From Hyphochytrium catenoides (Eukaryota; Protista; Hyphochytriomycota), in assembly GCA_900088475.1 (NCBI GenBank), contig FLMG01002741.1:1-35669 (forward strand): a DNA stretch of 35,669 bases. The letters are read 5' to 3'. Positions 23,495 to 26,400 of this stretch are shown here, one piece after another. The position numbers were made by a program, and so were the translations under genes. The notes under the pieces are model-generated. The model saw nothing but the letters and a program-made list of their open reading frames with translations, did no database searches and was not told where the DNA came from. Position 1 is the stretch's first letter, and every line of letters begins with the position of its first letter.

Positions 23495-26400
23495 TTACTT
23501 CGGCCTTGCAAAGACCAACATGGTGTCATAGTATCCCACTACGTCTCCTTGGCGCCCCTTCTGTCCCACGCGGACTCTCCCTCCTCTTCCATCCACCTCT
23601 TCAAGCACCGCTCCCGCAAGATAAGGGCAGCTTACGGGTGAACCACGAGTGAGAAACGCCTCTTCGTTTAGTACGCCATGGCCGTAGAGTAGGCGCACTT
23701 CATACATTCTAAGAAAGTCCAAAAGAAACAGAGAGGGAATTAGAATGCCAGGACGTAGAGATAGAAACTATGTAGGGCGAAGAATGATGACCACACAGAC
23801 CTATCTGAGATCCGGAACGCTTGCACTCTTGCCGGTCCAAACTTTGTAGGGAGGATCTCACCGACAAAGTACCTCTGTGCTCCTCCATCGCGGCCGTCTA
23901 GCAACTTCTTAGCTTTCAACCCAGCTCGTGCTGCCTCCCAGCTGGTGATGAACTTTGACAATATCATGAAGATAACATCAGAGGAGGCTGGGGAAGAAGA
24001 TGACGAAGAAGACTCTCCTAGATAGCGCGAAAGGCGCGCACAAATGGACTCCATTGCCCGCACCTCCACCTGTCCGAGAAGAGAATTAGTATCGGTAAAA
24101 AGAGTTAGGCAGTACTTGCCATACAGAGTCACAGAGGTGAAGGAAGAAATAAAAAGCAAGATGTGCAAGCCAAGGAAAGAGAAGAGAGAGGATCCAAAAA
24201 TCGCCGAGGTTTTGCTGTCACGCTGGAGCAACTCACCTGCAGCTGTATCACATCCTCCTCAATGGCATCCAGGAACCTTCTCATCCTCACAGCGAAGGGT
24301 GGAGACTGGTAGGGCCGAGGTTTGAATATTAAATCACTAATGCACTCGGCACGAACCCTGTGACTAATATCCTCCTTATCAGCCTGTCTCCCCCGATTCC
24401 CGTTTTGCCCTTTCCTTAACGGACCACCACTTCTGATCGCACTCAGAAGTGCCGATCGACCGATAGCTGGAGCATTGGGGAAAGGCGATGCAGCAGTGGC
24501 ACGTCCAGTCGCCGTATGAGAGGGAGTTTCGTGAGAAGTAGAAGAGGCATTCGCATCGGATGCAGGCTTCTTTCTTCTGATGTCAGCCAAAAGGTTGGCC
24601 CTCGCGGACGGAAGCGAAGGAGGCAAGATGGCCGTCGTCCCATTATCTAGGAATACCGCTGTCAGCCGTTGAAGTTCTCTTTTGTCAGGGCATTGTTCCT
24701 TTCCTCTCACCTTTCTGTCCAGCACTGTCGCTTAGTTGAGCAGGAAAGAGAACTGCAGATACAGGCTCTCTCTTATTATCAGTCGTCTCTTTCGCGATCA
24801 CCCTACGATCTTGATCATTCTCAGGCTTAGAAAGGCAGAGTGAAAGAGCGTTAGAGCGCACATAACGGACTTCCTTCTGTTATTGACTGTCCGCGACTTA
24901 CTTTCGCCCTAGTAGGGACCCAAAACCTATCTTCCTTTCCCATCCGATCTCTCTCTAGCTGCAGATCAACGTGTGATTAGGCAAATAGCGCAAACCGAAG
25001 CTTGAGTGCAAAGGAATACAACGGCCGTACCTGCTCTCTCCTTCTTGTGGCCAATCCTAGTCTAACATCCTCTTTATCCATCAGCTCTACCTCCTTCTTG
25101 GCTTCCACTTCTTCCCTCTTCTGAAGACGACGCGCAAGCTAGAAGTCAAGTTAGAGGGGAAGAGTAGTGACTGCGGTTAGAGGAAGAATGAGAAATGTCG
25201 AAGTAAACAGAAGCCGGTACCTCTTGTCGTCGTCTTTCCTCGGACTCTCGGTGCTTTTGTCTGGCATAGTGCTCATCCTCTTCGCACTCCCTGCGGCGCA
25301 GAGTTAGGTCACCACGAACAAGAGACCCATGCTCCGCCTTTAACCTTATCTTGAATGACAAATAGTAAGGCGAAGTTCTGAAAAGAAGCGGGCAGGACAG
25401 AGACCCTTAAAAGCTTTTCCCATACCTTTGAACGAGCTCATATCCTCTCTTCAACCCCCTGAACTGGGCATCAAGGATGACATTGTTCTTGTCTGCAGCT
25501 ATAATGACGGGACTGAGACTCTCCGCGAAGTCTAATAGCTCTCCCTCACCCCGTTGATGGATCATCATAATGAGGAACTCTAAAAAAGTCATGGATTGAT
25601 CTCTGGTCTTCGTCTCAGATAACTGAAAGAGAGACTCGAGAGTAATCCCTGCTGCCTCTGAGATCTCGGCGCTGCCTTGATTTAGCACATTTCCAAAGCG
25701 AAGAATGATGGCAAAAATTCTGGCCAGCTTGGAGCTGTTGAGCACAGCTTCCGCCGCATTATGCACTAACCGAACTGCGGCAAGCGAAGGGTTAGATAAG
25801 TTCAGGCGCTGCTAAGAGCAGAATGAGAGTGACATCCAGGAAGGTACGGAATGATCAGAAGATCCAGGACCCCGCCATTTGCAGCACTAGAGTCTGAATG
25901 AGACGCACGAGAAAGGTACTAGAACAAGTTGATACACATAAGAAACGAGAAAGTTTCCCACCTTTCCCTCTCAAGTCTGACCAGTGCTCACGGAACTGCG
26001 CCTTATAGAGCAGGGCAGAGACCTAGAGTGGATGTGCCGATAGATTAGAGGTGAGTAACAGAGAACTATGACCAGGTAAACAGGCAGATAAGGAAAAAGC
26101 GGTGTCGGTAATGCATAAGATGAAGAATACCGCCTAGGGAACGGGTAGATACCAAAATGACCAAATATTGATAGATAGATAATGACCAAAGAGAAGTGCG
26201 TAGGGTGGAGGGAGCTAGAAGAATCGCCACCTTAGTTGCCGCCCTGGGCACCGAGGTCATCTCCAGGAGGAATTGCTCAGCGGGATGGAGATCTTGTTTT
26301 TTATCGGCAAAAGCAAGGAGCTTTCGCTTCTCAGCTTCTGACGGGAGAAGCTCCTGCAGGGCTAGCAGCCTATCTGTGTCTAGGACCTCCTCATCTCCCT

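Follow-up and report, generated by a model that had tools for sequence, protein, structure and literature searches.

A Hyphochytrium catenoides formin gene whose FH2 domain is probably split by a WH2-bearing insert

In the usual formin mechanism, a compact FH2 ring is fed with profilin-actin by FH1, and optional WH2 or DAD tails follow the domain. Can WH2 motifs also lie inside the FH2 domain itself? The question is raised by a minus-strand formin gene of the protist Hyphochytrium catenoides (Hyphochytriomycota), on contig FLMG01002741.1 of assembly GCA_900088475.1, of which positions 1 to 35,669 form the window analysed here. An initial annotation, made from the letters of the window, had proposed that an insert of ~220 amino acids (aa) carrying two WH2 motifs divides the FH2 domain of this gene. 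The split is borne out at the level of sequence: the Pfam FH2 match halts where the insert starts, at position 296 of a 372-position profile; 235 aa of the exon model separate that position from the FH2 tail; and a significant WH2 motif shares its reading frame with the restart of FH2. This structural interpretation, a split FH2 with a WH2 insert, is probably right. Full-text literature searches found no description of WH2 motifs inside FH2.

FH2 on either side of the interruption

The gene was assembled from stop-free stretches of the minus strand, which carries all of its features, joined at canonical GT-AG sites; the contig has ~49% GC, is intron-rich and abounds in GA/CT microsatellites. 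Judged by its exons and domain matches, the locus is a genuine multi-exon, intron-rich formin gene. Against Pfam FH2 (PF02181, profile length 372, curated cut-off 34.8 bits), FH2 exon 1 (26231-26761), with the lasso (two Trp), linker and knob (NVLIGL), scores 61.5 bits over profile positions 13-158, and FH2 exon 2 (25426-25774), with the post region and the motifs GNVLN and LSETK, scores 79 bits over positions 183-296. A PDB search gave formin matches to exon 2 at E values of 5e-9 to 3e-5, the best being residues 193-308 of 402 in the FMNL3 entry 4eah. The profile gap at 158-183 would be filled by a small exon (VSALLYKAQFREHWSDLRGK; 25962-26022) with GT-AG sites and consistent phase, which supplies the first coiled-coil helix. 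By inspection, the spliced translation keeps IHW...TIW, NVLIGL, FGNVLN (a GNxMN variant) and LSETK, which we take, from Bni1 and mDia1, to represent the conserved lasso Trp, knob Ile, GN(Y/F)MN and post Lys. Because these residues, which dimerisation and actin binding require, are kept, FH2 should still fold and dimerise.

Exon 2 ends in ...FRGLKRGYELVQ (...GLKRGYELVQ) and the first part of a split AG|G Arg codon, and past the GT at 25425 just five codons are still open. Since Pfam stops at 296 of 372 and 4eah is aligned to 308 of 402, some 75-95 FH2 residues are still owed after exon 2. Two downstream pieces are candidates for them. The FH2 restart (PFAVRMRRFLDAIEEDVIQLQ; 24237-24299), a predicted helix, would begin the penultimate long FH2 helix, and it shares both exon and reading frame with the WH2 motifs. 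The following exon (...LSRYLGES...IFMILSKFITSWEAAR...; 23873-24069) has a language-model match in the ESM Atlas (score 0.92, 186 shared features), with 89 of its 100 nearest matches in FH2-bearing clusters, and resembles C-terminal fragments of FH2. The pattern that we take to mark FH2 tails is a long helix followed by YxGE and by an FFxxFxxFxxA-like stretch, and it is on this pattern together with the Atlas match that the FH2 identity of the tail rests.

The insert, its WH2-type motifs and the upstream layout

The insert itself stands as first annotated; its length needs correcting, since by our own count it has 235 aa (residues 316-550 of a 636-aa partial model). It is encoded by five exons, designated A to E, whose coordinates agree with those proposed initially; all have canonical GT-AG sites and compatible phases, and they join both FH2 parts in frame. 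Should exons A to D be wrong, at least ~118 aa of insert would remain within the single open frame of exon E. Coding potential was gauged by codon usage; the score, trained on 11 exons of the window that have homology support, picked the correct frame in 11 of 11 leave-one-out tests. Exons A (25221-25290; ECEEDEHYARQKHRESEERRRQE; phase 2 to 0; +0.35 bits per codon, best in the proposed frame) and B (25031-25138; phase 0-0; +0.40) encode a charged helix, followed by exon C (24902-24958; LERDRMGKEDRFWVPTRAK; phase 0-0; +0.15) and by exon D, a polar linker (24711-24825; phase 0 to 1; +0.15). All four are thus positive in the proposed frame, and the introns are negative. Exon E runs in full from 24658 to 24237 within an open frame at 24731-24237, and its insert part (24300-24658) encodes a disordered linker rich in Ser, Thr and Pro, both WH2-type motifs and a predicted helix (DKEDISHRVRAECISDLIF).

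In order, the insert comprises a 78-residue charged stretch, a polar, proline-bearing linker, ARANLLADIRRKK, a 35-residue spacer rich in Ser, Thr and Ala, GRSALLSAIRSGGPLRK and a short predicted helix. The first 78 residues are rich in Glu, Arg and Lys (56% charged), with many opposite-charge pairs at i/i+4, and form a probable helical stalk. Exons B and C each begin and end in phase 0, so either could be skipped without breaking the frame. Such phase-0 exons would offer a built-in means of varying stalk length, and B could be a cassette exon.

The second motif (GRSALLSAIRSGGPLRK; 24411-24461), a canonical helix followed by LRK, is a WH2 by Pfam (PF02205, profile length 28, cut-off 23.1 bits), scoring 31 and 26.1 bits in two query contexts. 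In the PDB it is matched by 3m3n, in which WH2 repeats of N-WASP were crystallised together with actin (E = 1.4e-5), and its Atlas neighbours are WH2 clusters (score 0.83). The first motif (ARANLLADIRRKK; 24567-24605) has the amphipathic helix only and scores 12.4 bits (E = 0.13) over profile positions 3-14 of 28; its IRR is directly followed by KKP, and the spaced L-K/R-K/R (LKKV-type) part is missing. Across all six reading frames of the 35.7-kb window, RxxLLxxIR is matched exactly twice; the two copies lie 48 codons apart in a single frame of exon E. The FH2 restart lies in the frame of the WH2 motifs, which is free of stops for 144 codons upstream of the restart; the probability of this by chance is ~0.007-0.015, given the low stop-codon frequency of this genome. 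A single-sequence AlphaFold2 prediction of exon E, of low confidence (mean predicted local distance difference test 54), places helices at residues 20-26, 67-76, 92-111 and 119-138, with coil elsewhere; its short helices coincide with both WH2 cores, and residues 119-138 are the FH2 restart helix. The initial claim of two WH2 motifs is therefore upheld for the second by the Pfam and N-WASP matches, and the first is reduced to a sub-threshold half motif.

A dynamic-programming search for the splice path with the best codon score across 25425-24659 reached 36.3 bits, against 19.9 +/- 4.4 in composition-matched null sequences (0 of 300 reached 36.3) and 3.3 in the gene's confident introns. The best path re-uses three donors (25221, 25031 and 24711) and one acceptor (24958) of the initially annotated exons, and the exact initial exon model scores 31.9 bits in the same scheme. 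A test of the longest open splice path (real, 515 nucleotides (nt); null, 411 +/- 49) was dropped as uninformative.

Upstream of FH2, an exon at 27246-28079 scores above the respective Pfam cut-offs for a FYVE zinc finger (45.5 bits) and for CCDC53 (46.8 bits; a CCDC53/WASHC3 C-terminal-like motif), and ends in ...LFLTSHGE before a GT donor. A probable linker exon of 33 aa (...GRLLNKTLRR; approximately 26929-27030), proposed from its GT/AG sites and its fit to the usual FH2 start, would join this region to the FH2 lasso. No polyproline FH1 separates the CCDC53-like motif from FH2 in any of the three frames of 27290-26740, and the proposed linker exon has zero prolines. The predicted formin is FH1-less and departs from the classical FH1-FH2 layout. 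A Pfam scan of two upstream pieces, namely the FYVE/CCDC53 exon and FH2 exon 1, gave no DID-type match.

Proposed mechanism and competing explanations

What might such an insert do? It would fall between the last two long FH2 helices, in the turn joining the post-to-knob helix and the returning helix. Other formins have a loop of ~10 residues at this site, and, from the order of FH2 helices, the turn would be exposed on the surface at the end of the coiled coil nearest the knob. The enlarged loop would project from that end, where a surface insertion need not break the fold. If its WH2 motif or motifs bind G-actin, a dimer would hold two to four monomers beside the ring, and a stalk and flexible tether next to the knob could concentrate monomers, favouring nucleation and perhaps monomer supply. 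With no FH1, profilin-actin would not be recruited in the usual way. We see an even chance that the gene is real, that its formin lacks FH1 and that WH2s in a loop on the knob side of FH2 tether G-actin. The initial annotation went further, to monomer delivery onto the ring as in a built-in Spire-formin pair, which we keep as a conjecture. In its fullest form, which we consider rather unlikely, WH2s on a stalk-and-tether FH2 loop would replace profilin/FH1 delivery and make the protein a self-contained nucleator and elongator, each ring half with its own G-actin, possibly regulated by alternative splicing of exons B and C. Monomers would then reach a processive barbed-end cap by a route not described before.

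Several results weigh against a WH2-bearing FH2 loop of this kind. Exon set A to E is predicted from sequence alone. The exon-2 donor has, by enumeration, 14 in-frame, stop-free direct acceptors, and splicing to one of them, the AG at 24337-24338, would take out the insert completely in a 1089-nt intron. Open splice paths as long as the real one occur in 6 of 300 null sequences, so a long path is not unusual by itself. Codon scoring of the part of exon E that carries the WH2s gives a value near zero, yet above that of the other two frames; we assume that a near-zero score is to be expected of a disordered linker. The first motif falls below the Pfam cut-off with its helix half alone and is not a full WH2. 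The tail pieces at 24237-24299 and 23873-24069, each searched separately, drew blanks in Pfam and in phmmer against PDB; of the split Pfam hit that the initial annotation expected, the stop at the insert was therefore seen (profile positions 13-158 and 183-296) and the tail pieces went unscored, their resemblance to the FH2 C-terminal helices coming from the Atlas match. A phmmer search of exon E against 1.84 billion representative proteins returned no homologue, only the spurious repeat protein P0001, and nothing was returned by a metagenome locus search with FH2 exon 2 or by an exact search with a 24-mer of exon E. Since WH2 and the FH2 knob occupy the same actin cleft, delivery would need a hand-over, and without one the feeding of elongation is doubtful. 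Protein homologue searches with the CCDC53 region, FH2 exon 1 and FH2 exon 2 were also blank, under a length filter that excludes full-length formins.

The gene model may be an artefact, or the insert may belong to an alternative isoform, with most or all of 25425-24337 spliced out to leave an ordinary FH2 and the WH2 coding sequence in a minor isoform or unused. Use of the acceptor at 24338-24337 gives ...ELVQ-S-DLIFKPRPYQSPPFAVRM..., a normal short loop, and 13 further in-frame acceptors could serve; the commonness of open splice paths in null sequences and the near-zero codon score in exon E point the same way. However, at 1089 nt this intron would exceed the others of the gene (52-208 nt) in length by a factor of 5-20, and the alternative acceptors stand in purine-rich contexts, unlike those of the model. 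Three features would also have to occur in such an intron by coincidence: a WH2 that is significant in Pfam and shares the frame of the FH2 restart, another RxxLLxxIR copy in that frame, and coding-like content exceeding that of 300 of 300 nulls. We regard this explanation as unlikely, and translation of at least the WH2-bearing part within FH2 as likely. Far less probable still is a decaying or mis-assembled locus in which the insert is junk between FH2 remnants. In its favour, N runs near 29.0, 31.6 and 32.6-32.9 kb mark gaps in the assembly, and GA/CT microsatellites are numerous on the contig, but no N run falls within 23.4-28.9 kb, and the FH2 exons and exons A to E have zero frameshifts or stops and canonical splice sites throughout. 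Independent sequence agrees: two 151-nt genomic contigs from a 2021 soil metagenome (run X4), ~97% identical and with introns included, confirm the local sequence at 24922-25072 and 25170-25318. The differences listed are four substitutions and one indel in introns, the sole indel listed, and two non-synonymous changes in exon A (H to N, R to Q). From this near-identity, the same or a sister strain lives in soil. Runs X5-X7 gave no matching sequence. Two runs of 2011, X2 and X3, share 0.48 and 0.34 of the sampled words of 24237-25811, and shares above ~0.26 tentatively hint at insert sequence among their reads; these runs may belong to the 454 cDNA that is part of the H. catenoides project (PMC5795050).

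An insert that is real could still serve another purpose, its WH2-type helices acting in DAD-like autoregulation, in barbed-end or side binding with capping, severing or bundling, as in the tails of INF2 and FMNL3, or in partner docking. The actin site common to WH2 and the knob and the missing LKKV part of the first motif lean towards such roles, and formin WH2/DAD motifs are reported to serve autoinhibition, severing, bundling and processivity besides nucleation (PMC5047451). Against them, the two upstream pieces have no DID-type match, the second motif is a textbook monomer-binding WH2 close to those of N-WASP, and the absence of FH1 leaves a need for monomer recruitment. A function other than monomer tethering is possible, if somewhat doubtful.

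Related architectures and neighbouring features

Where does this layout stand among known systems? The initial statement that formin WH2/DAD motifs lie C-terminal to a complete FH2 is sound, and the reported roles of these tails are to assist nucleation, severing, bundling or processivity (PMC5047451). INF2, FMNL1-3, mDia1 (DAD) and DAAM likewise combine FH2 with one or two WH2-type helices in one polypeptide, but their motifs come after a complete FH2 and often bind an N-terminal DID, whereas here they lie inside FH2, before its last two helices. The gene therefore falls outside the Diaphanous-related/INF2/FMNL type, defined by WH2/DAD after FH2 and an N-terminal DID. Spire paired with an FMN-family formin also brings WH2-bound monomers beside an FH2 ring. 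Spire is a separate protein with four WH2s, docked by way of a KIND-tail interaction, whereas one full and one half WH2 are present here in the FH2 chain itself, with no KIND/FSI features evident. Closer in domain order are ESM Atlas clusters from diatoms, oomycetes and foraminifera, in which a CCDC53/WASHC3 motif likewise directly precedes FH2; their representatives have 466-623 aa and, judged by length, are too short for the 235-aa insert. Such CCDC53-motif formins are probably the gene's own subfamily, and the pairing looks like a lineage-wide formin class. The gene is probably that of a stramenopile; an apicomplexan source, considered at first, was rejected.

Outside the formins, Sca2 of Rickettsia was reportedly first drawn as two formin-like halves flanking a WH2-bearing middle. 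This bacterial formin mimic is the nearest described case of WH2s in mid-elongator, but it is not homologous to FH2, and a later preprint argues that it has no true WH2 domains (bioRxiv 10.1101/467431). Trypanosomatid profilin has a 20-aa WH2-like helical insertion in a loop (PMC12472444), a precedent for a WH2-like helix inside another actin-binding fold, although the host fold differs and the insertion is 20 rather than 235 aa long. The MWHF formins were considered as a multiple-WH2 precedent and rejected; the name refers to multiple-wing-hairs-related, and these proteins are without WH2s.

Were the WH2-loop reading correct, a 235-residue insertion between the last FH2 helices would mark a permissive site in the fold, of help in engineering and in reading divergent formins. 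WH2s at this site in a formin without FH1 would make it testable whether tethered WH2-actin replaces profilin-actin in nucleation and processive elongation. Formin architectures of stramenopiles are poorly charted, and domain annotation may call an FH2 truncated where it is in fact split.

The remaining features of the window concern the ends of the gene and its neighbours. The CCDC53/WASHC3 C-terminal-like motif (27159-27290, minus strand) lies ~40 residues N-terminal of FH2. At the 3' end, a possible last exon (R MYEVRLLYGHGVLNEE... to the stop; 23498-23708) is in phase with the donor at 23872 and has a codon score of +21.8 bits, with no Pfam domain match and no WH2; its splicing is conjectural. 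If the donor at 23872 were left unspliced, read-through would add 44 codons to a stop at ~23743. A long plus-strand gene at ~13000-22700, many of whose exons are EGF-like and rich in cysteine (CSGHGKCSRYNVCQCYSGYTGGDC and CSNHGICDFETGVCR among them), converges on the formin 3' end. A multi-exon myosin heavy-chain gene occupies ~4100-10500 on the minus strand, with a P-loop GAGKTE, LDIFGFE, IQ-like repeats and a coiled-coil tail, and provided the codon-usage training set. Next to the N runs, at ~28990-29080, 31600 and 32600-32900, long flanking GA/CT microsatellites translate to RERERE or SLSLSL in many frames, so counts of long open reading frames in this genome are inflated.

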